From: Selaginella moellendorffii
Lineage: Eukaryota; Plantae; Lycopodiophyta
DNA length: 64,000 nt
NCBI RefSeq assembly: GCF_000143415.4
Contig: NW_003314292.1
Span: 1,371,498-1,435,497, forward strand
Direction of reading: 5' to 3'
The position numbers and the translations under genes were made by a program. Numbering within the stretch: position 1 is the stretch's first letter; each line of letters opens with the position of its first letter. Positions 6,970 through 49,775 of the stretch are shown here, piece after piece. Under the pieces are notes generated by a model, which saw nothing but the letters and a program-made list of their open reading frames with translations, was not told where the DNA came from and did not search any database.

Positions 6970-7786
6970 TTAACAACTCTGAGGTTTTCTGAGGCTCTTC
7001 AGATTTTTTGGTAAAGTATTCCCTGTAGCCTCGGCAAACTCCCTCAAAGCTTCAATAGCGTTCTCTTGGCGCACAGCAAGCCGCTTGTCCATATCCATTT
7101 CTCCCAACCTATTGCAGCTACCATATAGCATTTCGAGTGGCGACTGCAACATGTAGAAATGAATCAACATCCCGTGGACAATTGCAGCGATCGATCCCAC
7201 AAGTAGAAGGGCTTGTCTATGCCATCCCAGCGGTGGAGCAACGGTGCCCAAAACACAGGCAGCCATGTAACTCAAACCCCTCGTCATGTACACCACTATG
7301 AACTTGAACAATCCAGGCCCGTCATACCATCTGTCAGGAGCTGGTTGTAATACCGGAGTGAAAAGTCCACAGCATGATATCGCCAGCAGCGGAAGCATCA
7401 CCCATTGATTTGTGCTCATTATGGAACACACACCACTGAGAAAACCGCTGGTGCCTCCAACAAGAAAACCATATGCATTGCTTTTCTTTCGACCCAAAAG
7501 GGCAACGAAAAATACTGCATGGACGCACTTGTCAGTCTCGAGAGAGAAAGCAGTGAAACACTTAACATGCTACGAAGACGGGAACCAAAGCAGAAGCTCC
7601 GCTTCCTTCGGGGAACTCAGGGGGCCAAAATATGGCACCCATGTAGAACGCATATATAGTGAAGCAATGACTAACAAGATTCATCAAGAACTGGCGCCGT
7701 ATAATCCAGTGCCCACTGAGGTTCCAACTCTCATAGATATCAGCAAGATCATACTCACCATTTGGGCTCAACAATCCCTGCTCCAT
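6970..7786 (-). CDS. Unknown multi-pass membrane protein, MEQGLLSPNGEYDL family, copy 1 (intron 7566-7515, 52 nt)
   Basis: ATG at 7786; removing the GT..AG intron joins ORFs 7562..7810 and 6970..7497 in frame; several hydrophobic segments. Confidence 0.75.
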
Positions 7787-8089
7787 AGGGTAACCTAGAT
7801 TGTCCTGCAAATATATCCCTGACTGTAGCTCATCCGACGGCTATTAGAGGTGTGGCGAGAGCCTTTTGGGCTGTGCTTTTCATGACAAAGATTCCAAGGA
7901 GGTGCTGTCTGCCGGCTTTACTTGGCTCCACGGGCCATGATAAGTGCGGCTTGGTCAGACACAACTAGATCAAAAAGCTTCTACTACCATCAATCTAAAA
8001 CTTGGAGGGAATCTAAGTGGGGGAAGTTTTTTTTTCTGCACTGGGTTTCGCTTTGCAGAATGGGGAGTTTACGTCCAAGTTGTCCATGG

Positions 8090-9495
8090 TCACGCAGTAA
8101 TGCTTGTCCAAGTTGTAGCAGCGTTAAAACTTCGCTCGCGCCTCCTCCGGGGACACCTCCGCCGCCGACGCCGCCGCCCCAAATGCAGCACTGGGCGTGC
8201 TTGCTGGAGCTCCTCCTCCGCCAAAAATCGCCGCCGCCGTCCCAAATGTGCTCGCTGGAGTCTCTCCGCCAAACCAGCCTCCGGAGGACGTGTTCTTTGC
8301 TGGAGCTTGACTCGATACCTGCTCGAAAATACGCGATGGTGTGAAGAAGGCCCCGGACCACGTTTGAGCTCTGCCAGAACACGGGCCAAATGTGTGCTGG
8401 AAAGCATGCGACGGTGCTGCTGGTGCGAAGGGTGATTGTGGGTGATTGATGCTGGTGCGAATGGTTGTGGCGGTGGTGTTGCGAAGGGAGATGGAGAGGC
8501 CGGCGACGTTTTCGTTTTCTTGCTCTTGAGATGCTCCGCCACTCTTTTCAAGCACCACGTTCGGATTGGAGCCGCTGTTCGTCCCCAGCACCAGCGCCAG
8601 GAGCTCGCCGACGTCGACCTCCTTCTTCCGATCATCATCAGCCCCTTGATCTCGCCCAGGAGCCTGTGATCCTCCACGCTCAAGTGGAGCTTCACTGTCG
8701 ACTTGAGCATCTGGAAGTCGCTGGTGTCCATGGCCACCGATCCGGCCCTGGCAGCCGGGAAGACGGTGTCCTGCTTGGCTTCGTCCGACACGAACACGAA
8801 GATCCTCTCGTCCGGAGCCCACAGCCCATCGCTCACGTCCAAAACGTCTGCCATCTTCACATTCATGGCCGACTGGCTATCGATCCCATGCACACCCTCC
8901 TGGTTTTCACCAAGATCTCCTTGAGTTGCGCCTTGTTCGCCACCAACCCAATGTAGAGATCGTAAACATCGTAGCCGAGCTTGTTGGCTATGGCGGCAAC
9001 GAGCTGCTCTTTCCCACTCGCCTGGCGGCCATGGACGAGGTAGCTCCTCTTCCACGCCTTCCCAATCCTCTTGTAGTAGCTCCCACAAACGCCTCCAGAT
9101 CCTTGACTAGCGCTCGGCATTCATGGAGCAGTCCAGCGTCTCCAAGCTCGCGGGATGATCGAATTCGCAGCTCCCCCAGCTCATCTCGTCCACGGTGAAA
9201 AGGCGGCGTCGCTTGGAGACGGTGGCAGTGATGTGAGAAAAGTCGGCCTGGATCACGTCGTTAGAGTAGTGCGGCGGGAATGCCACCATGACATAGCGCG
9301 ATTCATCAGTGGCCCACGCTCCACTTGAAATCCAGGCCTTGGAACTTGTCACGGGAAAGCCCGGCTGGAGTCCCAAGATGAAGGGCGTCTTGTCGTCGAT
9401 CAAGCTCGCCCTGAAGAGCGCCGGCTGCTCCGGATTGACTGCGAGAGAGGAGAGGTAGCTGTTGGCGTAATTATAGAGCGCCGTCGTTCTCGTAT
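8090..9495 (-). pseudogene. Frameshifted BCS1-like AAA ATPase pseudogene with FG-rich low-complexity tail
   Basis: N-terminal AAA-associated region, HPASLETL, YYKRIGKAWKRSYLVHG, DGLWAPDERIFVF and C-terminal helices are spread over several frames. Confidence 0.85.
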
Positions 9496-9869
9496 CCGCG
9501 TGGCAGACTGTGCCAACACAGCCGCCACCTCAGCAGTCAACGCCACATCGGCCTGCCACCTGTGCCAAGCATTGGATGCTCAAAAAGCCATATTCACGGA
9601 TCTCAACCTGAAAAACAAGGAATTTAGGCCTGGCAAGATAGAGAGATATAAACATGCATACGAGGTGAGTTCTTCCATTATCCACCTTTCCAGGTCTCAA
9701 AACTAAATAGCTACGTCCTTGTGCTTGTTTCTCCCAGCTCATATTGATTATTAAAAGTCCGCAAAGCTTCTCCAGTGTTTCACCTGTATCGAGCAGCTCC
9801 TTTGCAGAAGTAGGCAATCGATGCACAAAAGTTTGTAGACATCAAAATGCTTGGACTCACGCTTGTTTC

Positions 9870-10050
9870 TCCAGTCTTTCCAAGCTGAGGTTGAGCACGA
9901 TCAGGTCACCCATCAGGCGCATGATATCCAAGCTACCACTCCACGCCACCCGACCCAGATCACTCTACATGACATTCTCGGACGATGGCCAGGACCTTCT
10001 CATCAAGAGTGTGGTGGAGCAATGTGGAATAAAAGCTGTCCATGAAGATC
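9870..10050 (+). pseudogene. Second truncated ACP-like fragment
   Basis: LLIKSVVEQCGIKAVHED, then breaks off. Confidence 0.75.
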
Positions 10051-12719: not shown

Positions 12720-12787
12720 CATATATAAATTATCTAATATTTTAGGATATGTACTAAATAAATTACTAATAGAAACCATGTTTTAGG

Positions 12788-14082: not shown

Positions 14083-14901
14083 TCAGATATGACAACTCTG
14101 AGGTTTTATGAAGCTCTTCAGATTTTTTGGTAAAGTATTCCCTGTAGCCTTGGCAAACTCCCTCAAAGCTTCAATGGTCTTCTCTTGGCGCACAGCAAGC
14201 CGCTCATCCATATCCATTTCTACCAACCTATCGGAGCGACCAAATAGCATTTCTAGTGGAGACTGCAACATGTAGAAATGAATCAGCATCCCCTGGACAA
14301 TTGCAGCAATCGATCCCACAAGTAAAAGGGCTTGTCTACGCCATCCCAGCAGTGGAGCAACGGTGCCCAAAACACAGGCAGCCATGTAACTCGTAATCTT
14401 CGTCAGGTACACCACTATGAACTTGAACACTCCGGGCCCGTCATACCATTTGTCAGGAAGTTGTATTACCGGAGTGAGAAGTCCACAGCATGATATCGCC
14501 AGCAGCAGAAGCATCACCCATTGATTTGTGCTCATTATGGAACACACACCACTGAGAAAACCGCTGGTGCCTCCAACAAGAAAACCATATGCATTACTTT
14601 TCTTTCGACCCAAAAGGCCATAGAAAAATACTGCATGGACGCACTTGTCAGTCTCGAGAGAGAAAACAGTGAAACACTTACATGATAAGAAGACGGGAAC
14701 CAAAGCAGAAGCTCCGCTTCCTTCAGGGAACTCAGGGGGCCAAAATATGGCACCCATATAGAACGCATATATAGTGAAGCAATGACAAACAAGATTTATC
14801 AAGAACTGGCGCCGTATAATCCAGTGCCCACTGAGGTTCCAACTCTCGTAGATATCAGCAAGATCATACTCACCATTTGGGCTCAACAATCCCTGCTCCA
14901 T
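14083..14901 (-). CDS. MEQGLLSPNGEYDL-family membrane protein, copy 2 (intron 14681-14631, 51 nt)
   Basis: Uninterrupted ORF; homologous GTAAGT..TGCAG intron. Confidence 0.8.
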   Translation of the reverse strand: MEQGLLSPNGEYDLADIYESWNLSGHWIIRRQFLINLVCHCFTIYAFYMGAIFWPPEFPEGSGASALVPVFLSCKCFTVFSLETDKCVHAVFFYGLLGRKKSNAYGFLVGGTSGFLSGVCSIMSTNQWVMLLLLAISCCGLLTPVIQLPDKWYDGPGVFKFIVVYLTKITSYMAACVLGTVAPLLGWRRQALLLVGSIAAIVQGMLIHFYMLQSPLEMLFGRSDRLVEMDMDERLAVRQEKTIEALREFAKATGNTLPKNLKSFIKPQSCHI

Positions 14902-15573: not shown

Positions 15574-15673
15574 NNNNNNNNNNNNNNNNNNNNNNNNNNN
15601 NNNNNNNNNNNNNNNNNNNNNNNNNNNNNNNNNNNNNNNNNNNNNNNNNNNNNNNNNNNNNNNNNNNNNNNNN
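15574..15673. other. Assembly gap (100 N)
   Basis: Run of Ns. Confidence 1.
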
Positions 15674-22849: not shown

Positions 22850-24458
22850 ATGATCGTCGGCTTCTTGATCGTGTTCTTGGCTAGCTCCTGCTCGGGTAGG
22901 CTCTGTTTTCCTCCCACTCGCCCTAAAAGCTGTGAAAAATCTTTCCGTGCTTTGGCAGCATTCGTGGGTGTGAACTACGGCACCGATGGCGACAATTTGC
23001 CCACTCCACAGCAAGTGGTGGATTTCCTGCAGCGGCAGCAAATCTCCCACGTCCGGATCTTTGACACCGACGCGGGGCTCCTCCAGGCATTCGCCGGATC
23101 CAACATCCAGGTGCTCGTCGGGATTCCAAACGAGGAGATCCTCAGCGTGGGAAAATCCAATGCCTCGGCGGTGGACTGGGTGAAGAAGAACGTCATGACT
23201 TATCTCCCAGGTACCAACATCACAGGGATTGTTGTGGGCAGCCAAGTTCTCACGGATTACTCCATTGCTGCTGCATCACTGGTTTCTACCATGAGGTACA
23301 TTCATGCTGCTCTCGTGGCCGCCAACCTCGACGACCAAGTGAAAGTCTCCACACCGCATGGAACTGCGGTCATCCAGAACTGGTTTCCTCCGTCGGCGGC
23401 GGTTTTCAATCAGAGCTACGCGGAGACTGTCATGAGGCCGATGCTCGACTTCCTGGCCGACTCGAGTTCCTACTTCATGCTCAACTTCTATCCTCTGGCG
23501 ATCTACGCGCAGAACCAGCAGACCATGTCCATCGACTTCGCCCTCTTCCGTCCCAACTCGGGACAGATCGACTCCAGCACCAATCTCCTCTACACGAACC
23601 TCTTTGAGACGGTCATTGATGGGGTGTACAGTGCTATGGCGGCTCTCAACTTCACAGGCATGCCGCTGGTGGTGAGTGAGACGGGGTGGCCATCGAGAGG
23701 TGATCCTGCGGAGGTGGCGGTCTCGCTCGACAATGCTGCGACCTATGCGAGTAACTTTGTGAGGCACATCCTCAACAACACTGGAACTCCTCGCAGACCC
23801 GGTCTCGCCATGAATGCCTATATGTACGAGCTCTTCAACGAGGACATGCGGCAAGGCGCGACGTCAGAGAAGAACTACGGGCTGTTTTATCCGGACCAGA
23901 CTCCAGTTTACACCGTCGACTTGACTGGGGCGAGCTTAGCGAGTGGCAATGGTACCAGAGTTCCATCCTGGTGTATTGCCAAGGAAGGCATGAGCACCAG
24001 CAGTTTACAAGCGGCACTGGACTACGCCTGTGGACAGGGTCGGGCCGATTGTAGCCAGCTTCAACCAGGACAGCAATGCTACTTCCCGGACACGGTTTTG
24101 GATCACGCAAGCTATGCCTTCAATAAGTACTACCAGAAGGCGATGATGGCACCAGAGAGCTGCGACTTCGCTGGAGTGGCCACAGTTACTTTCACGGATC
24201 CAAGTAAGTTAACCGCCTTCACAGTTTCTTGTTGTGTTAATTGTAATCTCTTTGCTTCCCAGGTCATGGACAGTGTCGATTTCCTACAATGTAAGTGTTG
24301 CATTTCGTTACATGGTTGTCTAATCTTTCGTTTGTGGTTCCAGTGTTCCACAGCAGAATACAACATCGCCCAATGTGACAAGAAGTTTTGGACAATCATT
24401 TAAGATTCCGCCGAGCACTGGACTCTTGTTTCTTTCGGTTGCTCTTTTCTGGAGCTAA
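22850..24458 (+). CDS. Glucan endo-1,3-beta-glucosidase (GH17 + X8/CBM43), probably GPI-anchored
   Basis: Signal peptide, VGVNYG, VSETGWPS, ELFNED, SEKNYGLF and X8 WCIAK..ALDYACG..DCS..CY. Introns at 22896-22958 and two near the 3' end give ..DPSHGQCRFPTIVPQQNTTS..LLFLSVALFWS*. Confidence 0.95.
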
Positions 24459-25230: not shown

Positions 25231-25388
25231 CATTTGGTGCACTGGAAGAATCGAATTAATCCTAATCTCTTTGTTCTTTAAATCCTGTCACGTGTCATTG
25301 ACCGGTGCCACGCTGTTGTGCCACATGGACAAATTTGCCACGTGTTTAATGCGCAGTTGACTTGAATAGTTTAGGGTTCTTGAGAGGT

Positions 25389-25697
25389 ATGGCGAGTAGT
25401 AGGTCCGTGGTGGTGTACGAGAACGATGGCGGGGCGCTCTACAATTACGTAAACAGCTACCTCTCCTCTCTCACAGTCAATCCGGAGCAGCCGGCGCTCT
25501 TCAGGGCGAGCTTGATCGACGACAAGACGCCCCTCATCTTGGGGCTCCAGCCGGGCTTTCCCGTGCGTGACAAGTTCCAGGGCCTGGATTTCGAGTGGAG
25601 CGCGGGCGTGGCCACTGATGAATCGCGCTATGTCATGGCGGCGTTCCCGCCGCACTGCTCCAACGACGTGATCCAGGCCTACTTTTCTCAATACTAG
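25389..25697 (+). pseudogene. 5' fragment (AAA-associated domain) of BCS1-like ATPase
   Basis: VVVYENDGGALYNYVNSYLSS..LGLQPGFPVRDKFQG..FPPHCSNDVIQAYFS is homologous to the 5' ends of the 4.4 and 9.4 kb copies; ends abruptly. Confidence 0.75.
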
Positions 25698-26111: not shown

Positions 26112-26930
26112 ATGGAGCAGGGATTGTTGAGCCCAAATGGTGAGTATGATCTTGCTGATATCTACGAGAGTTGGAACCTCAGTGGGCACTGGATTATACG
26201 GCGCCAGTTCTTGATAAATCTTGTTTGTCATTGCTTCACTATATATGGGTTCTATATGGGTGCCATATTTTGGCCCCCTGAGTTCCCCGAAGGAAGCGGA
26301 GCTTCTGCTTTGGTTCCCGTCTTCGTATCATGTAAGTGTTTCACTGTTTTCTCTCTCGAGACTGACAAGTGCGTCCATGCAGTATTTTTCTATGCCCTTT
26401 TGGGTCGAAAGAAAAGTAATGCATATGGTCTTCTTGTTGGAGGCACCAGCGGTTTTCTCAGTGGTGTGTGTTCCATAATGAGCACAAATCAATGGGTGAT
26501 GCTTCCGCTGCTGGCGATATCATGCTGTGGACTTCTCACTCCGGTAATGCAACTTCCTGACAAATGGTATGACGGGCCCGGATTGTTCAAGTTCATAGTG
26601 GTGTACATGACGATGATTACGAGTTGCATGGCTGCCTGTATTTTGGGCACCGTTGCTCCACCGCTAGGATGGCATAGACAAGCCCTTTTACTTGTGGGAT
26701 CGATCGCTGCAATTGTCCACGGGATGTTGATTCATTTCTACATGTTGCAGTCTCCACTAGAAATGCTATATGGTCGCTGCGATAGATTGGGAGAAATGGA
26801 TATGGATGAGCGGCTTGCTGTGCGCCAAGAGAAGACCATTGAAGCTTTGAGGGAGTTTGCCAAGGCTACAGGGAATACTTTACCAAAAAATCTGAAGAGC
26901 CTCATAAAACCTCAGAGTTGTCATATCTGA
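26112..26930 (+). CDS. MEQGLLSPNGEYDL-family membrane protein, copy 3 (intron 26332-26382, 51 nt)
   Basis: Intact ORF, closest to copy 2. The surrounding 25770-27100 is an inverted copy of ~13950-15410. Confidence 0.8.
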   Translation: MEQGLLSPNGEYDLADIYESWNLSGHWIIRRQFLINLVCHCFTIYGFYMGAIFWPPEFPEGSGASALVPVFVSCKCFTVFSLETDKCVHAVFFYALLGRKKSNAYGLLVGGTSGFLSGVCSIMSTNQWVMLPLLAISCCGLLTPVMQLPDKWYDGPGLFKFIVVYMTMITSCMAACILGTVAPPLGWHRQALLLVGSIAAIVHGMLIHFYMLQSPLEMLYGRCDRLGEMDMDERLAVRQEKTIEALREFAKATGNTLPKNLKSLIKPQSCHI

Positions 26931-28174: not shown

Positions 28175-31100
28175 GCTTTTTCCATGTACGACTGCTGCCT
28201 CTGCTCTAGTTCATCTGGATCCTGAGATAAACTCGTCCAACCGTGTAGCTTCCTCCGGTTATATAGATCCATCTTTTTTGTATGGCTGCCAGAAGAACTT
28301 CATGTTTCCATCTGTCTGGAACGATTTCTCACTCAATCTGGATGAGACTTCAGCACGTTCTCCTCGTCAATCCATCCGTGAGACGAAGGGTCAGGAACTC
28401 CAATTTTCCAGCACTTGAGAGCAAAACAGTGTAGAATCAGAAGAAAGAACTCTTACGTAAATCAGGCGCGTGTTCATGTCAAGCACACCTCATCCGTGCG
28501 TACGGTTATCCTTTCAGCCTTGATGTTGATGCGTAGACAGACAGACAGAGACTCCAATTCTCCCGTCACAGTCTGGTTCCCTCCTTCGCCTGCAGCAACA
28601 GTGAAGCTGCAAATGCTGTCCAGAATATTTATGCTGACCCTTGTCTCTGCACGTTTCCCAACACGAGTAAAACAATATAAAACAGCCAAAGATACACATC
28701 TCTCGTCGTCTTCTTCCCTGCACACTGCACTTCGCCAGTCTCTGCGGATCTTCGCCTGGATCCTTTGCTTCGCCTGGATCCTGGAGCTTGGAAAAATGCT
28801 GACAGTGGAAGGCGCTTTTTGAGTTGCTCGCTTGAACGAAGCACTCACTGCGCGATAAGAACTACTGTTGATCCGCAAAGGAGACTGGAATGAACATTAC
28901 CTCTTTGCGCGATTCGGGGCAGTCGACAGGTAGAAAAACCCTAGTTACAAGCAATGTCGGTGGTCCGGGGGAATGGCGGGCGGCGCCGATGCGCTCCCCG
29001 TGACGGCGGCCGATCATGGCGCTGGTGGTGAAGCGGCGAGCGACACTCTCCTGGGCGCAGCACCAGGGACTGCCGGAGGCGCAATGAGCAAGATCCTGGG
29101 CGCGGTGCCGAAGAAGAACATCCGAGTAAGAAACCAATGCTCGCTTGTCCTGGAACAAGTGTGTGTTTCTTTGTTTAGCGTGCAGCTGTCTCGATCACCG
29201 TCGTCCTCTTCCTGATTCCCCTACCATTCCTTGAGACGGGGATTCAGTCGAGCGTTTTCTTCGGCCTCTCCGGTGCGTTTTCTTTTTTTCATTTCCATTC
29301 CAGTTTGCAACGTTTTTTTTTTTTTCTCTCCAGAGATAAATTCGATATCTTGGTATATTTTCGGCCGTGAGCACAACGATCGTGTGGTCGAGGTGGTGAA
29401 TCTCCTGGGATTCATCACGGGAGTTTTCTATGCTGCATATGCATGGAAGGCTACATGGAAGCCCCTCTTCTGGCCCCCGGTGCTTGGGATCAGTCACTAC
29501 TGTCTAGTGTACCTGTTGCGCAAGTTCTACGACGGGAAGGAGAAGGAGTTCTGCTTCAAGATCGACGTCCTTGGTTTCATTGGTTGTGCGACCACAGCAG
29601 CCTCGATGCTTGCTCCCCTTGCTGTTCGAGTGGCGACCCTCCCTCACAGCAGTGCCCGTTGGAGCTGGGTGGTGCCACTCTAAAACCATGTCTCTGGCTT
29701 GTAACGTGGCATGGGCTTGGTTTGCGACCCTTGATAACAACAAGGCCATCCTAGTAAGTTTCTAATCTTCTTCGTTCTGGATTAAAACTTTGGTTGGTTT
29801 TTCAGATGTCCACCATGTTTGCCGCGGGCTGTGCAGCAATTCTTACCTGCCTGATGCTAGTTTGAGGCCTTTCTAGTTTTTACTCTACAAACATTGTTGT
29901 AGAGTTCGCTCGCTCGCTGAGTTTTGTTTTTTTTTTTACTCTGCTCGACGTGGAGTTCGCGAAATAAAATTGTCCTATCACCCTCCATGACGACGTTAGA
30001 TTGCGTTCTAGGTAGTCGCAGAGATTCCCAAGCACCAGGCACTGATCTCACCAGCAAGCGTCGGCATCCGTGGCGCATTCGTGTTCTTCTCCGCCACCTT
30101 GTGAAAGAGACCGTGCCACTTCCCCACCAGGGATAGCCTGTAACGATGGAATTCCAGCTGATGATGTCGCTCTCGTGCATCCGATCGAACGAGGTCCCGG
30201 GTTTCGTGGATTCAATTGCCCTGGCCTTCTGCCACATAGGATTGCTGGAGTTAGCGCGAGCATCCGTTCTTAAACAAAGCCACAGAGAAAAGAGAGATCT
30301 CTTTCTGGACGAAAAACCAATGAAGTTTTCCTACTGATCACTGGTGAAGCCCAGAGAAGCGGAGACAATGAACCTGCGATTCCTGGAGCTCCGGGATCTT
30401 GTTCCGGTTCTTCAAAAAATGCGGGCTTTGAATAGAATTGCTGCGTTTTGTTTCCATGATCTCCCAAAAGGAATGTGACAAGAACTCACAGAACTACGTC
30501 GTGGTACTGAGCTTCAAAATCACGTATACCTTCGTTCCTTTTGCCATTACATGGTCCTCAATTTGCACTGCGTTCTTTGCTCGATGGTGTAACTGTGTGC
30601 ACGAGCATTTCATGAAACCAAAGAAAAAAAAACGTGTGAAACAGGCTGCCTTCCAAGTTCCAACCTCCTGAAGAACGCAGTATCAGGATCCCTTGCGAAA
30701 CAACATTCATTGTCGTATCCAATCATATACCTGAAAGTACATGGGCGAAAACCTGACGGAGGCCGCTCTAGGTACCAAGGAAGAACCTGAACGAGAACTC
30801 CAGTTAGAACGAAGAGAATTCAGGCCTATAGCGAGAAGATCCCTATGGGTCTTAAGCTTCTCCTCGACTCCTCTTTTGAAACTCCACAAGCCAAGAAGAG
30901 AGTGCAAGGCCGACGCCAGGAACTCCGATCCACGAGCTCGTGAATGCGCTCATTGCTCTTTCCTTGACGAGATCCTTCAACTCGTAGGACTTCCTAGACC
31001 ACATAATTTGCATCGGTTCTATCGACAAGAAAGAGCAGAAAGCCTTTCTGCACAGGACGTGATGCTTGCTGGTGGATCTGGTGCAGCCATCATTCCTAGA

Positions 31101-32020: not shown

Positions 32021-32831
32021 ATGGAGCAGGGATTGCTGAGCCCAAATGGTGAGTATGATCTTGCTGATATCTACAAGGGCTGGAACCTTGGTCGCCACTG
32101 GATTATGTGGCGCCAGTTCTTGATGAACCTTGTCTGTCATGGCTTCACTGCATATGGGTTTTATATGGCTACCATACATTGGCCCGCTCAGCTATCCCCT
32201 CAGTTAGCTCCAGTAGGTTACTTTCCGGCCATGTTGTTATCAGGTCAGTTTTCTTTCTTCCCTTTTTAGAGACTAACAAGAGCTCCATGCAGTAAGTATG
32301 CTCGTTCGCTTTGGTCGAAAGAAAGCTTTGACATACGGTTTTCTTGTTGGGGGCATCAGCGGTGTTCTTTCCGCAATGATCACGAATCAGTGGGTGGTGC
32401 TTCTGCCGGTGGTGATATTATTCTGTGGACTTTGCACTCCAGCAGCAATACTTTCGCCTGAAGCTTGGAATGACGGCCGCAGTTTGGTTATCTTCATGGT
32501 GGTCCTCATAATGAGGCAAATGGCTAACCTGGCCTGTATTGTGGCTGCCATCGTTGCTCCACCGGTTGGATGGCAAGTTCAAGCTGTTGCACTTGTGGGA
32601 TCGACCGCTGCTATTGTCTATGCGATGCTGTTTCATTTCTACATGTTGCAGTCCCCACTGGAAATTCTAGGTGGTTGCGAGGGTTTAAGAGGAATGGATA
32701 TAGACCAGCGGCTTGCTGTTCGACAAGAGATGGCCATTGAAGCTTTGAGGGGGTTTGCAGAGGCCGCAGGGAAGACTCTCCCAGAAAATTTGAAGAGCCT
32801 CAGGAAAACTGAGTGCTGTCCGCTTCTGTAA
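32021..32831 (+). CDS. MEQGLLSPNGEYDL-family membrane protein, divergent copy 4 (intron 32244-32292, 49 nt)
   Basis: Splicing GTCAGT..TGCAG joins ORFs 32018..32269 and 32298..32831 in frame. Confidence 0.8.
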
Positions 32832-33293: not shown

Positions 33294-34110
33294 ATGGAGC
33301 AGGGATTGTTGAGCCCAAATGGTGAGTATGATCTTGCTGATATCTACGAGAGTTGGAACCTCAGTGGGCACTGGATTATACGGCGCCAGTTCTTGATGAA
33401 TCTTGTTAGCCATTGCTTCACTATATATGCGTTCTATATGGGTGCCATATTTTGGCCCCCTGAGTTCCCCGAAGGAAGCGGAGCTTCTGCTTTGGTTCCC
33501 GTCTTCGTAGCATGTAAGTGTTTCACTGCTTTCTCTCTCGAGACTGACTGACAAGTGCGTCCATGCAGTATTTTTCGTTGCCCTTTTGGGTCGAAAGAAA
33601 AGCAATGCATATGGTTTTCTTGTTGGAGGCACCAGCGGTTTTCTCAGTGGTGTGTGTTCCATAATGAGCACAAATCAATGGGTGATGCTTCCACTGCTGG
33701 CGATATCATGCTGTGGACTTTTCACTCCGGTGTTACAACCAGCTCCTGACAGATGGTACGACGGGCCCGGATTGTTCAAGTTCATGGTGGTGTACATGAC
33801 GAGGGGTTTGAGTTACATGGCTGCCTGTGTTTTGGGCACCGTTGCTCCACCGCTGGGATGGCATAGACAAGCCCTTCTACTTGTGGGATCGATCGCTGCA
33901 ATTGTCCACGGGATGCTGATTTATTTCTACATGTTGCAGTCTCCACTCGAAATGCTATATGGTAGCTGCGATAGGTTGGGAGAAATGGATATGGACGAGC
34001 GGCTTGCTGTGCGCCAAGAGAAGGCCATTGAAGCTTTGAGGGAGTTTGCCGAGGCTACAGGGAATACTTTACCAAAAAATCTGAAGAGCCTCAGAAAACC
34101 TCAAAGTTGA
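33294..34110 (+). CDS. MEQGLLSPNGEYDL-family membrane protein, copy 5 (intron 33514-33568, 55 nt)
   Basis: Near-identical to copy 1; splicing restores the frame. Confidence 0.8.
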
Positions 34111-34263: not shown

Positions 34264-36867
34264 TTAAGAGAAGTCAATACCATTACACTCGTTCTTTCCC
34301 ATTCTCACTACTCTAAGCTCTTCCTTCTCCATCCCTACACTCCGATAGATGTTTGCCATCAAGATATACGCACTCGCCTGCTTGTCATCGAATTCCAAGA
34401 GCTTCTCAAACGCAACCTCGGCAACCTTAACGTTCTTCCACTTCCAGCATCCGCCAAGAACAGTCTTCCACGTCAAAGAGCTTGCTCTCGTAGGCATGCT
34501 GCTCGCCAGCTCCAGAGCCTCCTCTACTCGGTTGGCCCGGCCCAGCAGATCGATCAGGCAGTGGTAGTGCTCCAAGCTCGGAGCCACTCCAAACTTTGAG
34601 GACATTTCACCGAAGAACTTGGTGCCTCGATCGACCAGGCCGGCGTGACCGCAGGCTGAGAGAACCGAGAGGCAAGTGATCCCGTTGAGACCGATCCCTC
34701 CATCGATCATGGCCTGGAAGAGCTCAAACACCAGCTCCGTCTCGCCCTCCCGGCTATAGCCAGCGATGATCGTGCTCCAAGTTACAACGTTTCTCGAGCT
34801 CATCGAGTCGAAGACGTGCTCCGCCGCGGCCAAGCTCCCACACTTGCAGTACATGTCGAGCAGGCTGTTCGCCACGAACTGGTCCTTCTCGCCTCCATTC
34901 TGGCACGCCTCCGCATGGATCTTCCGACCAATCTCAATCGCTGCCAGCCCGCTGGATGCTGTGAGGCCAGCAACGAAGATCCGCGTGTTGGCGGCACGGC
35001 TCTCGGGTTCCATCCTCCAGTAGAGCTCCAGAGCCAGCTCGGGCTCGTCCTTCTCGGCGTATCCCATCAAAAGAGTCGTCCACAGCACCGCGTTGTGGGA
35101 CGGGATCCTGTCGAAGACGACCCGGGCGTCCAACAAGCTCCCGCATTTCACGTAGAGGTCGGCAAGAGCGCTGGCCACAAAGATGTCGGATTCGCAGCCA
35201 AACTCGATCGCCTGAGAGTGAACTGCCATTGCTTTGTCCAAGCAGCCAGGCTTCACGAACTTGTTCTCGTCAACTTCCACTTCGGCTTCTTTCGAGTTGG
35301 CGGCTATGTCGATGCAACCTTTCAGCGCTCCCAAGAAGGCCCGAGAGTCTGGAACACAGCCCTGAGACCTCATGCGTTGGAACCACTCGAGAGCGAGCAC
35401 GCCTTCACCGTTATCGGCGTGTCCCATGATGAGCGAGTTCCAAGTCACCAGATCATGGAGCGGCATCCTCTCGAACACCTCCCGAGATTTCTCCAGGCTC
35501 CCACACTTTGCATACGAGTCCACCAACGTGCTGGCCACGAAGACGTCGAACTCACACCCGGATCTGGCAGCTTGCGCGTGAATGGCCTCGACTTTCCGCA
35601 GAAGCTCCGCCTTCAAGGCCTGCTTCCTTGGCTCGCTGCCGTGATCTTCTCGAGCGGCGAGTCCTCCATAGGCCATGAGAGCAGCCACGAAAGTCCGGCA
35701 ATTCGGTGCGCAGCCCTCCGCTTGCATCCGCTCAAAGGACTTAAGAGCGAGGTCGAACTCCCAGTTGTCGATGTAGCCGAGAATGAGAGAGTTCCACAGC
35801 ACCAAATCCTTGCGGACGATCTTCTCAAACACCAGCCCTGCATTCATCATGCTGCCGCACTTGGAGTACATCCCGACCAAGCCGCTAGCAATAAAGATAT
35901 CCACTCCACCGCTGCTTCTCTCGGCCTGAGAGTGGACGAGCAATCCTTTCTCCAAGCTCCGGACCTTGACAAGCTTCCCGTCCACCACCTTGCTCTCTTC
36001 TCTGGCGGCCAGGTTCCCACACGCGATCACGGCCGCCAGGAAAGTCCGCGGGCTCGGGCAGTCCATTCGGCAGAAAACTTCCAGAGCTAGCTCCTCCTCT
36101 CCATTCTCGGCATAGCCCAGGATCAAGCTGTTCCACACAACCACGTCCCTCGCCACCATCTGGTCGAAAACTCTGCGAGCATCGTGCAAGCTTCCACACT
36201 TGCAGTACATATCCACAAGCGTGCCAGCCACGAACTTGTCGGAGTAACACCCGCTTTTCATCGCTCGAGAGTGGAGATCCATCCCTCTCTCCAGTGATCC
36301 AAGCTTGACGCTAAAACTCCTCTCACCCGCAACCATCTGTGGAGTCTCTTTCGCGGCCAAGCTTCCACAGGCGATGAGCGCCGCGACGTAGGCTTTAGCA
36401 TCGGCCTCCAATCCCTGTTCCTCCATTCGGGCAAAGATGCCGAGAGCCTCCTCGCCTTGATCGTTGTTGGCATACCCAGACATGAGCGCCGTCCACGAGG
36501 CCAAGCCCGGCGATGCGATCGTCTCAAACACTGCTCTAGCGTCGGGCAGCGATCCACACCTGGAATACATCCCGAGGATTGCATTGGGGACGTGCGCGCC
36601 AGAGAAGAACGCTCCCGATTCCACGGAATCGGCATGGATCCTCTTCCCTGCGTCGAGATTCTTGGAGGCAATGCAGGCCTTGAGTCCGTCGAGCAGGATC
36701 CACACGAATGCCTGATCGATGGCACCGCGCGACGAAATATCGGTGACGCGCGACGAAGTTTCCGAAATACTGACCCGATCAAGCGTCCTCCAGGTGGAGG
36801 AGCTGCGATTCTTCCTTCTCCTGCTACAGCAATCTATGCAATGCTTTGCAGCTCCATCCGCGCGCAT
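34264..36867 (-). CDS. PLS-class PPR protein ending in E motifs, no DYW domain
   Basis: 867-aa intronless ORF with repeated LVDMYxKCGSL..A..VF / V.WN.LI.GY motifs; ends WKTVLGGC..AYILMANIY. Confidence 0.95.
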   Translation of the reverse strand: MRADGAAKHCIDCCSRRRKNRSSSTWRTLDRVSISETSSRVTDISSRGAIDQAFVWILLDGLKACIASKNLDAGKRIHADSVESGAFFSGAHVPNAILGMYSRCGSLPDARAVFETIASPGLASWTALMSGYANNDQGEEALGIFARMEEQGLEADAKAYVAALIACGSLAAKETPQMVAGERSFSVKLGSLERGMDLHSRAMKSGCYSDKFVAGTLVDMYCKCGSLHDARRVFDQMVARDVVVWNSLILGYAENGEEELALEVFCRMDCPSPRTFLAAVIACGNLAAREESKVVDGKLVKVRSLEKGLLVHSQAERSSGGVDIFIASGLVGMYSKCGSMMNAGLVFEKIVRKDLVLWNSLILGYIDNWEFDLALKSFERMQAEGCAPNCRTFVAALMAYGGLAAREDHGSEPRKQALKAELLRKVEAIHAQAARSGCEFDVFVASTLVDSYAKCGSLEKSREVFERMPLHDLVTWNSLIMGHADNGEGVLALEWFQRMRSQGCVPDSRAFLGALKGCIDIAANSKEAEVEVDENKFVKPGCLDKAMAVHSQAIEFGCESDIFVASALADLYVKCGSLLDARVVFDRIPSHNAVLWTTLLMGYAEKDEPELALELYWRMEPESRAANTRIFVAGLTASSGLAAIEIGRKIHAEACQNGGEKDQFVANSLLDMYCKCGSLAAAEHVFDSMSSRNVVTWSTIIAGYSREGETELVFELFQAMIDGGIGLNGITCLSVLSACGHAGLVDRGTKFFGEMSSKFGVAPSLEHYHCLIDLLGRANRVEEALELASSMPTRASSLTWKTVLGGCWKWKNVKVAEVAFEKLLEFDDKQASAYILMANIYRSVGMEKEELRVVRMGKNECNGIDFS

Positions 36868-36953
36868 TGGTGGTCACGCATTCTTGCCGCCATTCATCCT
36901 TCTCGCCAAGAACCCTAAAATGCGGCCCAAGAACCCTAAATTTCTTGCGATCA
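36868..36953. promoter_or_regulatory. Candidate compact bidirectional promoter/5'UTR with two ccaagaaccctaaa (telo-box-like) copies
   Basis: 86 bp between the ATG at 36867(-) and the ATG at 36954(+); 14-bp direct repeat at 36906-36919 and 36927-36940. Confidence 0.5.
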
Positions 36954-39320
36954 ATGCTCTGTCGATGCTTCCCGCGATCTACAGCGGCAGCGCATCGCTG
37001 CAGCATCAAAGAATCGTCGAGCTCGATCATCACCATACCCCTGCTTCTCACCGCTCTCAAGGCGTGTAGCAGCGCCAGGGATTTGGAGCTGGGCAAGAGG
37101 ATCCACGCCAATGCTGCCGAGACCGATCGCACCAGCGACGTCTTCATCGCATCCAAGCTCGTCGACACGTACGCCAAATGCGGGAGCATGAGCGACGCCC
37201 AATCGGTCTTCGCGGCGATGCGCGAGGACAGCGTCGTCGCCTGGACGGCTCTCATGCTGGGATTCGTGGAGAATGGCCACGGCGATTTGGCGCTGGAGCT
37301 CTTCGATCGAATGCTACGCTCGAGCTGCCGCCCAAATGCCAGGACCTTCCTCGCGGCTCTCAAGGCCTGTGTGAGCCTCGTCATAGCCAGAGCTCTTCCG
37401 GGTGGAGAAAACTTCCAAGGAACTGAGAATCACCTTGCGCGAAGAACGGTGCTAGATCCGGAGAGAACAATCGAAGGAACTATCCATCTTGATATTGGAG
37501 AGACTGTCCAAGCAGGAGATTTCTCGCCAAGAACAGTGCTGGATTCTAGCCACCTTCGAAAGAGCACTGGAGAACTCCACCACCACCTCGAGAGAGCAGT
37601 GAAGATCCATTCGCTAGCTCGTTCCAGCGGCTGCGACTCGGACGTCTTCGTCGCAAACACACTGGTGGATCTCTACGCGAAGTGTGGGAGCTTGGATCGA
37701 GCGCAGCGAGTCTTCCATTCCATAGCTCGTCCCACAGTGGTGTCCTGGACGTCACTCATCCTGGGATACGTAGACGCTGGCGATGGAGCCACGGCGTTAG
37801 AACTTTTCGAGAGAATGAAGATCCAAAATACCTGTCAAGCCGACGCTCACTGCCTCGTCGCAGCTCTCAAGGCCTGCTCGCTCGCTGCCGAGAAAGAAGA
37901 GCGCTCCACTGACTCCACCAAACTTCTCGGCCTGGAGAAAACTCGATCCATCCATTCCGACGCTCTTGCTCGCGGCTACGCCTCCAACATCTTCATCAGC
38001 AGCTCTCTGATCGATGCGTATGCCAAGTGTGGAAGCATGATCGAAGCTCGGGCAGTCTTCGATAGCATGCCTCGCCACGACGTGATTTGCTGGACGTCTC
38101 TCCTCACTGGCTACGCCGAGAATGACGAACCCGAGCTATGTCTCCAGCTCTTCTCTTGCATGAGGAGCCATGGCTGCTCTCCAGACGCTCGGACTTTCGT
38201 TGCAGCACTCACTGCCTGCTCGAGCCTGGCTGATCTTGAGACTGGGAAACGAATCCAGCAAGAACTCTCCAGCCACGGCTTCCAGAACGATTGCTTCGTG
38301 GCAAACTCGCTGATCGACTTCTACGGCAAGTGTGGCTGCCTGGCTCAAGCCGAGAAAGTCTTCCACGCCATGGGAAGCTCTAGGCGTAGCTTGGTCTCTT
38401 GGAGCTCCCTCATAGCCGGCTACAGTCGCCAGGGTGATGCTCAGCGCGTCTTCGATCTCTTCCAGGCCATGAAAGACGCTGGCGTCGGCGTGAATGGCAT
38501 CACTTTCCTCTCCGTTCTCACTGCGTGCAGCCATACCGGTCTCGTTGAACACGGGCGCCGTTACTTCGAAGAGATGGTAACTCGTCACGCCATAGCCCCC
38601 GAGATCGAGCACTACCACTGCATGGTTGATCTTCTAGGCAGAGCCAACCATCTGGATGAAGCTCTGGAAATGGTGACCACTGTCATGCCTTTCAAACCCA
38701 CCGTAGTAACGTGGAAGACCGTCCTGGGTGCTTGTCGAAAGTGGAAGAACGCCAAGTTGGGAAGAGTTGCCTTTGAGAACCTGGTGAAGTTATACCCCAA
38801 GCAGGATTCAACGTATCTCTTGATGTCGAATCTGTATGGCAGCCTGGGAATGTGGGACGAGCAAACCAGTGTTCTTCATCTCAGGTCCGCTGCTCAGACC
38901 TCCAAGAAACCCGGACTAAGCTGGTGGACTGACGATCGCGGACTCGTCCACGCCTTTAAAGTTGGTGACAAGAGCCATCCTCAGATTGAAGCAATAAACT
39001 CGAAGCTGAGAACTCTGGCACTTCAGTTGAAGGAGAACGGGCACGTAGCCGACCTGAGCAGTGTCTTTCACAACATCTCCGACGTTGACAAAGAAGATGC
39101 TCTGTGTGAACACAGCGAGCGGCTAGCCATTGCCTGTGCACTCGTCAACACGGCACCAGGAACTGCTATACGAGTCGTCAAGAGCTTGAGATTCTGCGAT
39201 GACTGTCACTCGGTGATTGCGGGTGTTTCCAAGCTCGAGCAGCGTCAGATTGTCTGCAGGGATTCGAGCCGGTTTCACGTCTTTGAAAACGGAAGGTGCT
39301 CCTGTAACAACTTCTGGTAG
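36954..39320 (+). CDS. DYW-type PLS PPR protein (candidate organellar C-to-U editing factor); ORF is open from 36846, likely start 36954
   Basis: PLS repeats, E domain, PG box KKPGLSWW, HSERLA, CDDCH and terminal CSCNNFW. Confidence 0.95.
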   Translation: MLCRCFPRSTAAAHRCSIKESSSSIITIPLLLTALKACSSARDLELGKRIHANAAETDRTSDVFIASKLVDTYAKCGSMSDAQSVFAAMREDSVVAWTALMLGFVENGHGDLALELFDRMLRSSCRPNARTFLAALKACVSLVIARALPGGENFQGTENHLARRTVLDPERTIEGTIHLDIGETVQAGDFSPRTVLDSSHLRKSTGELHHHLERAVKIHSLARSSGCDSDVFVANTLVDLYAKCGSLDRAQRVFHSIARPTVVSWTSLILGYVDAGDGATALELFERMKIQNTCQADAHCLVAALKACSLAAEKEERSTDSTKLLGLEKTRSIHSDALARGYASNIFISSSLIDAYAKCGSMIEARAVFDSMPRHDVICWTSLLTGYAENDEPELCLQLFSCMRSHGCSPDARTFVAALTACSSLADLETGKRIQQELSSHGFQNDCFVANSLIDFYGKCGCLAQAEKVFHAMGSSRRSLVSWSSLIAGYSRQGDAQRVFDLFQAMKDAGVGVNGITFLSVLTACSHTGLVEHGRRYFEEMVTRHAIAPEIEHYHCMVDLLGRANHLDEALEMVTTVMPFKPTVVTWKTVLGACRKWKNAKLGRVAFENLVKLYPKQDSTYLLMSNLYGSLGMWDEQTSVLHLRSAAQTSKKPGLSWWTDDRGLVHAFKVGDKSHPQIEAINSKLRTLALQLKENGHVADLSSVFHNISDVDKEDALCEHSERLAIACALVNTAPGTAIRVVKSLRFCDDCHSVIAGVSKLEQRQIVCRDSSRFHVFENGRCSCNNFW

Positions 39321-39482: not shown

Positions 39483-41574
<2,092 letters not shown>

Positions 41575-43972: not shown

Positions 43973-44222
43973 GGTGGATCGACTATGGCGCTAGATCGAA
44001 AATGCGCGCTCCAAAGCCTCCTAGACAAGCAAGATTTCTCCCGATCCAAATTTCTCACTCCTCTCCCTCTCGCCTTCCTCGCCCTACCTCTCCTCTCTTC
44101 TAGTAAAGAAATTCTCCATGGTTTTAGTCAAAGCTTTGTGGCTCGTCAACTATTTCTACCCGTCAAACAAGACTGCGTTGACTGTTAAATTATTCTTTTC
44201 TCTTAGCGATCAAATTCCTCCA

Positions 44223-46130: not shown

Positions 46131-46333
46131 CGAGGACAAGTGAACAAACCCAAAACTGTGTTAGGCAACACACTGTCCTGGTCCAAGCTCTCGTCGTCAT
46201 GCGTGGACTTTGACCGAGAGGATATTTGCCAGCTTTATATAGTTTTTTCCCTTTAAGAAATTACAATTTTGTCCGTAGGAAACATCAATCAAATAGAAGG
46301 ACGGCTTTCTTAAAATAAATTATAACCAATGAG

Positions 46334-47183
46334 CTAACCATATCTGCGGAGGTAACTATTGATGTGCGGAGGTTTCTTGAGGCTCCTCAAATTCTTGGGT
46401 AAAGCATTCCCTGTTGCTTCAGCAAACACCCTCAAAGCTTGAATGGCCTTGTCTTGCATCACAGCAAGCTGTTTGTGAACATCAACCTCTTCCAAATCCA
46501 TTGCTGGAAAACCAACACAATAACCCCATAGAGGTTCGCGTGGAGACTGTAACATGTAGCGATGAAGCAGCCCTGCGTAGAAAATTGATCCCACAAGTAC
46601 AAGGGCTTGTACTTGCCATGCTAGCGGTGGAGCCGCAAGGGCCAGACTATAAGAACCCACGTAGACCAACATCCACACGATGGAAATCACGATGGACGCG
46701 AACACTCCAACCCCATCATACCAGTCGTCAGGAATTGGTTGCATGAAAGGAGTGAAAAGTCCACAGCATGATATCGCCAGCAGCAGAAGCATCACCCATT
46801 GATTTGTGGTGATTAAGGAACACACACCGCTGATGCCCCCAACAAGAAAACCGTATGTGATAGTTTTCTTTCGACCAAAGAAAATATACATAAGCGCTAC
46901 ATGGACGCCATTGTTAGTCTCTAGGAAAAGAAGGAAAAATAAACTGACCTGAGAAGAACCCGGCCCCTATGAAAGCAAAGGTTGCAATCGTTGCAGATAC
47001 CTCTTCAGATCGCTGAGGGGGCCAATGTATGGTAGCCATATAAAACCCATATGCAGTGAAGCCATGACAGAGGTGATTCATCAAAAACTGGCGCCACATA
47101 ATCCAGTTGCGACCGAGGTTCCAGTCTTTGTAGATATCGGCCAGATCATACTCACCATTCGGGCTCAACAATCCCTGCTCCAT
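46334..47183 (-). CDS. MEQGLLSPNGEYDL-family membrane protein, divergent copy 6 (intron 46948-46897, 52 nt)
   Basis: Splicing GTCAGT..TGTAG joins MEQGLL..GFFS to ALMYIFFGRKK.. in frame. Confidence 0.8.
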
Positions 47184-47509
47184 AGGGCAAATTCCCCTTA
47201 CCCTAAGAACCAAGCATATCCTTTTATGCTGGCAAGAAGGCCTTTTGGTACTGGAAAGACGCTCCGAGTTTTCATCCCAAGCAATGGTCTCCGCAGACGA
47301 TGTATTCCTCTTTGATGACACAACCAGCTCCAAGAGGGTGGGTTGCAGATAAAATTTCTTCCAAAACAGCTTTCGACACAACGCTATCCACTGTAGAATG
47401 TAGAGAAAAAAAGACCATGCCATGCATTTCAATCTGAGAAACGTACCAATTGGGGCCTGAAATGAAGCACCGCGGTTGTTCATTTGCTGCGTGCATGTTC
47501 TTACAGGAA

Positions 47510-48740
47510 TTATTCGATCTTTCCACCCGAACGGACACGTTTGATCCCGTCGCCACCTTCCTCCAAAGCCCTGACGTTCATGCTGGTATTCGCTGGGCGA
47601 CCATCGCTCTACAAGCACTCCGGTGAAGACGACTCGGGATTCACCCAGCGGGGAGACCTCATGGCCTCGAAGTTTGCGGCTCCACTCTCGCGAGCCATGA
47701 AGATCGGGGCCAGAGCCTTCTGTTGGGCTGGATGGACGTCCGGAATCCGTAGTAGAGCCTGTGTCCGAGGAGATTGCTGGGGAAGTGACTGCCAGCATGA
47801 AGGGAATTGTCCATCTCTGTCCCGGTGCTGCTACTGTGTTAGTCTCGCAATTGCGGCAAGATGGTGTCATCGTTCACTCGCATGTAAGCATTCGTCGTCA
47901 TTTCCTTGCTCCTCGTTTTTACGTGTTTGTCTCCTTTTTTTTCTCTCTTTTTCTGGCAGCTTCTTCTGGCATTCTATTTTCCTTGCTTTTTACTTCCAGC
48001 TTCATCGATGTGGCTTTGCAGATTTGCAATGCAGTTTTGGCAGCGAGGATAATGAAAGCAACGCTTGTGCTGCCTTGTGGAACGATAAAAGGTCCTATCG
48101 TTTGCTTTCTCGTCCCTGGTTATGATAAAGAGCAAACAGTTTTTTTTATGTTGCAGAGGTCATTTATGATTTACAACACTTTATCAAATCGCTTAGACAC
48201 GACGTCAAGAATCGTTTCAAACCGGACGTGATGCAGCTGAGAAAGTCAGCAGGCTCCGCGCTGAAGGCCACTTGATGTCGATCCACCTCCGATATGAGAT
48301 GGACATGCTCGCTTACGTACTTTCGACTTTCGCATTCTTTCGCCACTGACAAGCTTCTCTCAGGTGCCTCGCTTCAGTAGATACTAGGAAAGTCCAGGAA
48401 GCCGGAAGTGTCTCTTTACACCGGAAGAAGTCGGGCAGGCAATTGGCTTCGACACAATTCGACGTGCCTCTACCTCGCAGTGGGCGACATCTTTCGAGGC
48501 GAGAGGTTCATGCACCCACTGCGAGAATCCTGACCTGGAGAATTGCACTACCGTCGCTGCTCCGGACTGACCAGGCCGAAGGGAGAGGACTACTGGGACC
48601 GCCGGTGGGTGCTTGTCAATTCATGAGAGCTTCCGAGCGGCAGCCATGGCCTTCGAGGCACTCACACGGTTCTTCTGCCTGTCCACCTCGAGCTTTGTCG
48701 CTTCCTCTTCCTCACCAGCTTTATCACCAAGCTCGAAGTT
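47510..48740. pseudogene. Rearranged O-fucosyltransferase-family pseudogene (3' part on minus, 5'/middle part on plus)
   Basis: QICNAVLAARIMKATLVLP on plus; the C-terminal part on minus is homologous to 49970-50270. Confidence 0.75.
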
Positions 48741-48811
48741 GCAACCTGCTCTTCGTATGTAGATCACCGAGAGCAAGAACACACCGGCGGTCCCAGTAGT
48801 CCCCTCCCTAC

Positions 48812-49173
48812 CGGCAAAGAGAGCCGCGAGATAGAGCGAGGACGTGAATGCCTGGAGACCTTGGTTGTCATACTTACAGTAATTGTTCTCATGGGCAGCG
48901 TGCTTGCGGACATAGACAGTGGGGAAAAACTTGATGAGAAAATCGTCCATGGCAATAACACCACCTAGAAAAAAAACACAGCGAGAGAGAGAGAGAGCAG
49001 ATCTGTAGAACTTGCAATAAGTAAAAACCTCTTCTATACCTGAGATTCCAATGTCATATCCAAATATCAAACCTCCGCTAGCGCGATGCAAGCTAGCAAC
49101 ACCGGAATGGTAGTGCGACCCTTGTAATTGATCTGCCTATTTGCGATGAAGCGAGAAGAGATCCTCCAGCCAT
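48812..49173 (-). pseudogene. 5' fragment of STP (exon 1 to mid exon 2)
   Basis: Near-identical to 45775-46130, with small deletions. Confidence 0.9.
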
Positions 49174-49359
49174 CGAGGACAAGCGAACAAACAAACCCAA
49201 AACTGTGTTAAGCAGCACACTGTCCTGGTCGCCATGCGTGGACTTTGACCAAGAGGATATTTGTCAGCTTTATATAAATTCACATAATATTTTAAAACTA
49301 CAAATTCTCACTAAGAAGAATGGATTTCTTAAGGATTACTTGAAATAAATAGCAACCAA

Positions 49360-49775
49360 CTCAACTAAGCAGGCTCTTCAAATTCTGGGGTTGTTGCCTC
49401 AGCAAACTCCCTCAAAGCTTGAATGGCATTCTCCTGCATCACAGCAAGCTGTTTGTCAACATCAAGGTCTGCTGGAAAACCACTCATAGAAGGTCAAGTG
49501 GAGTGTAACATGTAGAAATGAAGCAGCCCTGCGTAGAAAATTGATCCCACAAGTACAAGGGCTTGTACTTGCCATGCTAGCGGTAGAGCCGCAAAGGCCA
49601 AACTAAAAGAACCCCCATGGAAATCACGATGAACGCGAACACTCCAACCCCATCATACCAGGAAAGGAGTGAAAAGTCCACAGCATAGCAGCGGAAGCAC
49701 CACCCATTGATTTGTGGTCATTATGAACACACGTATGTGTACGTTTTCTTTCGACCAAACAAAATATACGTAGCC
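49360..49775 (-). pseudogene. Deletion-riddled MEQGLL-family copy 7
   Basis: Colinear with 46370-46895 (gcagccctgcgtagaaaattgatcccacaagtacaaggg) but with many deletions and no exon 1. Confidence 0.85.

Follow-up and report, generated by a model that had tools for sequence, protein, structure and literature searches.

Introduction

The major facilitator superfamily, or MFS, makes up the largest family of secondary transporters, whose members nearly always consist of one chain in which two six-helix bundles are fused. The MFS superfamily as defined in TCDB also includes six-helix families, for example 9.B.143 (DUF1275) and 9.B.111 (the LysS membrane domain) (PMC8154325). In full-size members an axis perpendicular to the membrane relates the N bundle to the C bundle, and the halves of LacY (N6 + C6), when expressed as separate chains, reconstitute function (PMC8154325). 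Here we describe a gene family of the lycophyte Selaginella moellendorffii whose products very probably correspond to the N-terminal six-helix bundle of an MFS transporter, encoded as a stand-alone protein. Six intact copies (c1 to c6) and one decayed copy (c7) lie within 64,000 nucleotides (nt) of assembly GCF_000143415.4 (contig NW_003314292.1, positions 1,371,498-1,435,497 of the forward strand), a stretch referred to below as the window and used for all coordinates. A search of the literature located no paper on a plant stand-alone MFS N-domain family or on these loci.

Results

Gene Models and Protein Architecture

Using one copy as a tblastn query against the window, we located seven places, and splice modeling, based on GT..AG sites and on the longest frame, yielded six intact two-exon genes of 253-265 amino acids with a single intron each. 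On the minus strand, c1 (7786..6970) consists of exon 1 at 7786-7567, a 52-nt intron at 7566-7515 with the donor GTTAAG, and exon 2 at 7514-6970 including the stop codon; its product of 254 amino acids is 100% identical to P0002 (LOC9649576). Also on the minus strand, c2 (14901..14083; exon 1 14901-14682, 51-nt intron 14681-14631, exon 2 14630-14083) encodes 255 amino acids that are 100% identical to P0001 (SELMODRAFT_416691). Three copies follow on the plus strand. The first, c3 (26112..26930; exon 1 26112-26331, 51-nt intron 26332-26382, exon 2 26383-26930), encodes 255 amino acids and is 100% identical to P0016, a protein from an allelic scaffold. The second, c4 (32021..32831; exon 1 32021-32243, 49-nt intron 32244-32292, exon 2 32293-32831), encodes 253 amino acids and is 100% identical to P0005 (SELMODRAFT_416695), which maps to the same interval. 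The third, c5 (33294..34110; exon 1 33294-33513, 55-nt intron 33514-33568, exon 2 33569-34110), encodes 253 amino acids; it is 97.6% identical to c1, and no exact database match to it was found. On the minus strand again, c6 (47183..46334; exon 1 47183-46949, 52-nt intron 46948-46897 with a TAG acceptor, exon 2 46896-46334) encodes 265 amino acids, 100% identical to P0003 (LOC9649731). Thus, five of the six spliced models (c1, c2, c3, c4 and c6) are letter-identical to database proteins.

Exon 1 measures 220, 223 or 235 nt, which puts the intron in phase 1 throughout. Donor sites read GTAAGT, GTTAAG or GTCAGT and acceptor sites CAG or TAG, with a branch-like CTGAC or CTAAC motif 5' of the acceptor. 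All exon insertions and deletions (indels) between copies are in frame, and intron lengths vary by 1-6 nt, not in multiples of three. A previous reading of the sequence alone had listed six intact genes and one decayed copy with phase-1 introns of 52, 51, 51, 49, 55 and 52 nt, and our models agree with it exactly. The N- and C-terminal motifs that it quoted are invariant or nearly so across 17 members of the family, and its several hydrophobic segments correspond to the predicted helices described below. It had also remarked that splicing always restores the frame, which is true and trivial, because intron length has no effect on the frame; the informative observation is the restriction of exon indels to in-frame ones. 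Its statement that other duplicated gene fragments in the window are broken holds for the STP, AAA_assoc, O-FucT and SWEET pieces that we checked.

In c2 and c3, the 51-nt intron (14631-14681 and 26332-26382, respectively) is stop-free and in frame, and its retention would add 17 residues past helix 2 without truncating the protein. The 207-residue RefSeq model of c2 (P0015) begins at an internal methionine.

Each protein of about 255 amino acids comprises a conserved head (MEQGLLSPNGEYDLADIY...) of about 26-33 residues, about six predicted hydrophobic membrane helices, and a conserved tail of about 55 residues that contains one helix. In all 17 members, the sequence [F/L/Y/V]-G-R-K-K aligns with MFS motif A (G-x-L-x-D-R-x-G-R-K/R) of the helix 2-3 loop, though lacking its aspartate, and the family intron falls just before GRKK. 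Judging from this loop and from the charge pattern, both termini probably lie in the cytosol, as they do in MFS proteins. An acidic dileucine sorting signal was considered for the N-terminal E-Q-G-L-L and dropped, as its spacing departs from the canonical [D/E]xxxL[L/I].

A canonical MFS protein has twelve (or 11-14) helices in two six-helix bundles per chain, and the proteins described here have six predicted ones. Their half size is genuine and a C-terminal bundle is not encoded. The position of the stop codon is conserved in all subgroups, 10-25 residues past the conserved ...LP.NLKSL, and the DNA downstream of c4, c5 and c6 leaves no coding space for further exons. The gap between c4 and c5 is 463 nt, the 3' neighbor of c5 is a PPR gene on the opposite strand, and the stop codon of c6 ends 203 nt upstream of the start codon of STP7, a sugar transporter gene that is described below.

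Probable Relationship to the Major Facilitator Superfamily

A number of weak signals point toward the MFS. UniProt names two members "MFS profile domain-containing", and language-model features place Sugar_tr/MFS_1 at 0.97 and 0.95. The weak matches to Pfam MFS_1, NCBIfam PunC and the OCT-type TIGR00898 (E 0.14-1.4) all begin at the invariant GRKK. When a profile of the 17 members was used for searching, it returned S. moellendorffii members and a single outsider, the bacterial MFS protein P0157 (E 0.89), which falls into the aromatic acid/H+ symporter type (TIGR00895, 1e-55; TIGR00898, 5e-42).

We compared the 17-member family alignment (A2) with P0157 by hhalign and obtained a probability of 80% (P 1.4e-5) against P0157 alone. 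Because P0157 had been chosen by the family's own profile, relatives of it were fetched independently and combined with it (A4), which raised the match to a probability of 95.6%, with P 1.3e-8 and a score of 65.3 over 123 columns. The match spans family positions 74-198 and MFS positions 61-187; it sets in where helix 2 ends and stops shortly after helix 6. The score was 60.7 after P0157 was removed from A4, and when only the three relatives that are 26-32% identical to P0157 were kept it was 30.5 (P 8.6e-4), in the same register. As controls, the reversed family profile scored 26.9, and the maxima of 60 block shuffles and 60 segment-order shuffles were 25.5 and 45.8, respectively. All 17 members also match singly, without a change of register (P 4e-7 to 1e-3). 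In the alignment, family-invariant residues fall on MFS landmarks: GRKK coincides with motif A in the helix 2-3 loop, past helix 4 an acidic residue and a Trp are matched, and so are A-P-x-x-G-W ahead of helix 6 and (Q/E)-S-P following it.

The predicted structure gives a similar picture. For P0029, the most divergent member, the ESM Atlas model has a predicted template modeling score (pTM) of 0.64, and its ten nearest structure sets, in a comparison of predicted models, are all MFS. The best match is an organic cation transporter cluster, with a template modeling (TM) score of 0.69 over 211 residues (query 13-247).

Selection on the Family

Ratios of non-synonymous to synonymous divergence (dN/dS) were calculated by the Nei-Gojobori method on the six spliced coding sequences, with bootstrap confidence intervals (CIs). 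For the whole gene, the deep pairs c1-c4, c1-c6 and c4-c6 gave dN/dS of 0.58-0.61 (CI 0.42-0.89) at a dS of 0.46-0.52. The N-terminal 33 residues gave 0.04-0.30, and as dS over the same residues is 0.26-0.71, the constraint acts on the protein and not on the DNA. Both termini combined gave 0.29-0.40, with upper confidence limits ≤0.72. In the helix core (residues 34-193) the ratio was 0.76-1.07 with CIs that span 1, making the core indistinguishable from relaxed constraint. For the young pairs, dN/dS was 1.0 for c2-c3, which have only 23 differences, and 0.12 for c1-c5.

Taking these ratios with the in-frame-only exon indels and with open reading frames (ORFs) that have stayed open across a dS of about 0.5, the coding sequences clearly point to genes that are maintained and to cytosolic termini under purifying selection. 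The core appears to be weakly constrained on average and to evolve almost neutrally, apart from invariant Gly/Pro/Trp positions; in all 17 members, Gly, Pro, Trp, Ser and Thr positions in helices 3-6 and their loops are invariant. Positive (diversifying) selection in the core was considered and is unsupported, given that the CIs span 1.

Distribution of the Family

As queries we used the exons, a stop-free read-through of c3 that includes 17 translated intron residues, and then the database proteins identical to our models. A word-seeded search of 5.8 billion proteins gave matches from S. moellendorffii only. Exhaustive phmmer against representatives of 15 billion proteins likewise gave family-like matches from this species only; two long outsiders, P0032 (E 2.5e-6, in 10 short stretches) and P0034 (E 1.3e-4, in 7), were weak. 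Other lycophytes are represented in the collection, since Diphasiastrum complanatum was recovered many times when the neighboring sugar transporter was the query. In these protein collections, which were searched without the genomes of other Selaginella species, full-length relatives have so far been seen in S. moellendorffii only, and the fold very probably has remote kin within the MFS.

Duplication History

Comparison of the window with itself revealed nested tandem and inverted local duplications, in which the duplicated unit also includes fragments of AAA_assoc (BCS1-like) genes. DNA identity is 96.6% between c1 and c5 and 97.1% between c2 and c3, 91-94% between these two groups, and 73-76% between any of these four copies and c4 or c6; c6 and c7 are 83% identical. 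Beyond the window, the family is annotated on four scaffolds (1.85, 2.10, 4.13 and 6.18 Mb), and the window's own scaffold carries the further members P0156, P0010/P0011 and the fragment P0033. In the tree, c1 pairs with P0012 (98.8%), c2 with P0017 (98.8%) and c3 with P0016 (100%), and all three partners are on the 2.10 Mb scaffold. The S. moellendorffii assembly contains both haplotypes, and we read the four scaffolds as two loci, each in two haplotypes. Since c2 and c3 are separate genes on both scaffolds, both paralogues are present in both haplotypes. The family copies are true paralogues.

Decayed Copy and Neighboring Genes

The decayed copy c7 (about 49392-49928, minus strand) consists of pieces of exon 2 in three frames with stops and frameshifts; exon 1 is not recognizable there. 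Its position upstream of a broken STP fragment repeats that of c6 upstream of STP7 (P0036; 44226..46130, minus strand), an intact gene for a full-length 12-helix sugar transporter. The c6-STP7 and c7-STP fragment arrangements are one pair that was duplicated together as a unit. Broken partial STP copies are found at 48813-49147 and 60106-61385, both on the minus strand, and beside the latter the interval 60459-60836 is dense in short direct and inverted repeats (78-90% self-match on both strands). Derivation of the family from the adjacent STP7 was considered and rejected, as hhalign against plant STPs does not improve on shuffles and the intron positions differ, STP7 having no intron at the position that corresponds to the family intron.

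AAA_assoc (BCS1-like ATPase) fragments are repeated beside family copies at 3881-4980, 8903-10049 and 25362-25694. The older gene models P0007, P0011 and P0013, in which such fragments are fused to the membrane protein, are probably mis-annotations.

The cluster is flanked by a 2.7-kb inverted repeat (1124-3798 versus 31037-28297) of 93% identity. Its right arm holds a SWEET (MtN3_slv) fragment at 29231-29680, the third kind of sugar-transporter sequence in the window. Between the inverted arms of c2 and c3, the spacer is occupied by an intact single-ORF gene of the glycosyl hydrolase 17 + X8 (beta-1,3-glucanase) type at 22850-24403 on the plus strand, with AT-rich flanks (GC about 0.30, 16-22 kb). 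Next to c5, two long, intronless PPR genes stand head to head at 34264-36867 (minus) and 36846-39320 (plus), so that the 5' ends of their ORFs overlap by about 20 nt; one ends in an E motif and the other has a DYW deaminase domain.

One assembly gap of 100 N (15574-15673) falls in intergenic DNA of the window, 673 nt upstream of the start codon of c2. No family copy or real ORF crosses it, and the ORFs listed across it are artefacts of translated N. This gap could bear only on the joining of the c1-c2 block to the rest of the window.

Discussion

A number of observations weigh against the identification of the family as an MFS N-terminal bundle. Pfam and NCBIfam scans of the exons, the read-through copy and the 17 members returned nothing at threshold; the best Pfam E-value, to MFS_1, was 0.33, seen in 3 of the 17 members, Sugar_tr gave no match, and NCBIfam E-values were 0.14-1.4. 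A profile search of the PDB gave nothing relevant, its sole match being a chance histone at E 1.2. The choice of the anchor P0157, the top-ranking outsider from billions of proteins, inflates the hhalign P-values. In the comparison with 28 plant STPs (A3), the family profile scored 24.1 (P 0.028), a value reached by 3 of 60 block and 12 of 60 segment-order shuffles and approached by the reversed profile (22.4). On the structural side, the ESM Atlas result sets predicted models against each other, AlphaFold2 on two family alignments gave mean predicted local distance difference test (pLDDT) values of 40 and 49, which are unusable, and Foldseek with the pLDDT-49 model found nothing below E 0.18 and listed MFS among NhaA and TRPV entries. 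In the proteins themselves, every member lacks the aspartate of motif A, and the arginine of helix 4 is likewise absent, although neither residue varies across the MFS sequences used for comparison; these two losses argue against ordinary proton-coupled transport. Finally, with dN/dS near 1, the core may do little beyond spanning the membrane. When the bias in the selection of the anchor is weighed against the hhalign controls and the structural result, we remain highly confident that the family derives from the MFS N-terminal domain. The sequence-only reading had been unable to assign these genes to a known family, and the profile and predicted-structure alignments to the MFS N-terminal six-helix bundle now replace that statement. 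The match to a well-characterized family stands at the level of superfamily and fold, and it does not extend further, the proteins being half-size and below every curated family threshold. That reading had also proposed a locally duplicated membrane-protein family under selection with conserved termini and a variable membrane middle, all of which is borne out, the selection by the ratios at the termini (0.29-0.40, upper limits ≤0.72), the in-frame indels and the intact ORFs. Its suggestion that the family may be diversifying finds no support in core ratios of 0.76-1.07.

What might a half-size MFS protein do? The best overall explanation, which we favor with moderate confidence, is a half-MFS family under selection whose six-helix units pair and form a solute pathway. 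If both termini are cytosolic, all protomers would insert in the same orientation, and two protomers, of the same or of different paralogues, may pair about an axis perpendicular to the membrane. Such a pair could form a pathway for small solutes with a lining that varies with the combination of paralogues, and the conserved head and tail might serve in pairing, sorting or regulation. Pairing is favored because a perpendicular axis relates the two bundles of MFS proteins and because the halves of LacY reconstitute function (PMC8154325). Taken by itself, the pairing and transport mechanism is a tentative proposal. Still more speculative is the idea that parallel homo- or heterodimers of N-type bundles are natural MFS transporters, with about 10 paralogues per haplotype, whose helix cores change fast, providing combinatorial substrate specificities; if true, these dimers would be a living analogue of a hypothetical pre-fusion stage of MFS evolution.

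Alternatively, the proteins may be non-transporting, membrane-anchored adaptors or regulators in which the core only stays in the membrane, while head and tail bind sorting machinery, kinases or full-length MFS proteins such as STP7, perhaps replacing one bundle. This main rival, which we think somewhat less likely than pairing, fits the selection pattern at least as well as pairing does, since selection is concentrated on the termini and the core is near neutral. The loss of the aspartate from motif A and of the arginine from helix 4 is also in keeping with it, as is the location of c6 and of the decayed c7, each directly upstream of an STP gene or fragment. However, most copies are not beside an MFS gene, no partner is known, and the Gly, Pro, Trp, Ser and Thr positions of the core that are invariant in 17 of 17 members exceed what an anchor needs.

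The family could instead be a true orphan, either arisen de novo or diverged beyond recognition, whose likeness to the MFS is convergence of hydrophobic helices and a basic loop. Three exhaustive or profile searches that gave family matches from S. moellendorffii only would be expected of an orphan, and so would the absence of sequence matches in Pfam, NCBIfam and the PDB and the failure of the plant STP comparison to exceed shuffles; moreover, the MFS is the commonest multi-helix family, and weak matches gravitate to it. We nevertheless find this improbable, because hhalign gives a collinear match of about 123 columns that has four family-invariant motifs on MFS-conserved positions, withstands the removal of P0157, and exceeds all shuffle and reversal controls, and because the independent structure-based search yields MFS clusters only.

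It is very unlikely that the genes are relics, that is, truncated 5' halves of an MFS gene that were spread by segmental duplication and whose ORFs are open by chance. The region is indeed full of broken gene fragments, one copy has visibly decayed, and dN/dS is about 0.6 for the whole gene and 1.0 for the young pair c2-c3. However, six ORFs are intact in the window, and more on three other scaffolds, despite a dS of about 0.4-0.5. Exon indels are in frame only, splice sites and start and stop positions are conserved, and the termini appear to be under clear purifying selection in the presence of synonymous divergence. The decay of c7 itself illustrates what neutrality looks like in this region.

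The least credible alternative, that c1/c5 and c2/c3 are assembly artefacts in which two haplotypes were joined inverted across the gap at 15574-15673, could draw on an assembly that contains both haplotypes and on the 97.1% DNA identity of c2 and c3, inverted either side of the gap, but it is rejected by the separate allelic partners of c1, c2 and c3 (P0012, P0017 and P0016) on the second scaffold, as well as by the very uneven identity (84-97%) and differing gene content of the two arms and the lack of a twin for c4 and c6 in the window.

A single-bundle, multi-copy plant family would offer a test of whether such a bundle works alone or as an N+N pair. It would also show what the cytosolic head and tail contribute, and by what route membrane proteins of half size originate and multiply through local duplication. 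Even if they turned out to be inert or to have only a regulatory role, the proteins would still provide a modest but clean case of a truncation family confined to one lineage. The annotation can be corrected as well, with the label MFS N-domain-like for about 25 gene models of S. moellendorffii that at present carry the names "hypothetical" or "uncharacterized".

Comparison With Known Systems

DUF1275 and the LysS membrane domain are, like the family described here, natural single six-helix units related to the MFS, but a relation in sequence to our family was not seen; Pfam DUF1275 was absent from the general scans of the family, in which no profile or structure comparison was aimed at it. 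Split LacY shows that a six-helix bundle folds and inserts alone and works after pairing. It is, however, a laboratory construct of two different halves, whereas only N-type halves are present here and any pair would be N+N. SemiSWEET is a half-size unit whose parallel dimer is the transporter, with the units fused in the full-size SWEET; its fold is different, with three-helix units, and the parallel is one of analogy only. Within the window, STP7 belongs to the same superfamily as the half-MFS family, but the profile similarity between them does not rise above shuffles.

The closest resemblance is to the Sugar_tr-type clade of the MFS, which includes the aromatic acid/H+ symporters (TC 2.A.1.15), organic cation transporters and sugar porters. 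The likeness extends to six helices with cytosolic termini, the GRKK loop that aligns with motif A, the G-W and (Q/E)-S-P motifs, the profile alignment over helices 2-6 and the predicted fold. Unlike canonical MFS proteins of 400-550 amino acids, members of this family have about 255 and only the N-terminal bundle, carry conserved head and tail peptides of their own, fall below all curated thresholds and have so far been seen in a single plant species. The architecture, a stand-alone MFS N-domain multiplied in a plant, is unusual, experimentally tractable and under selection, and it is not an unknown fold.

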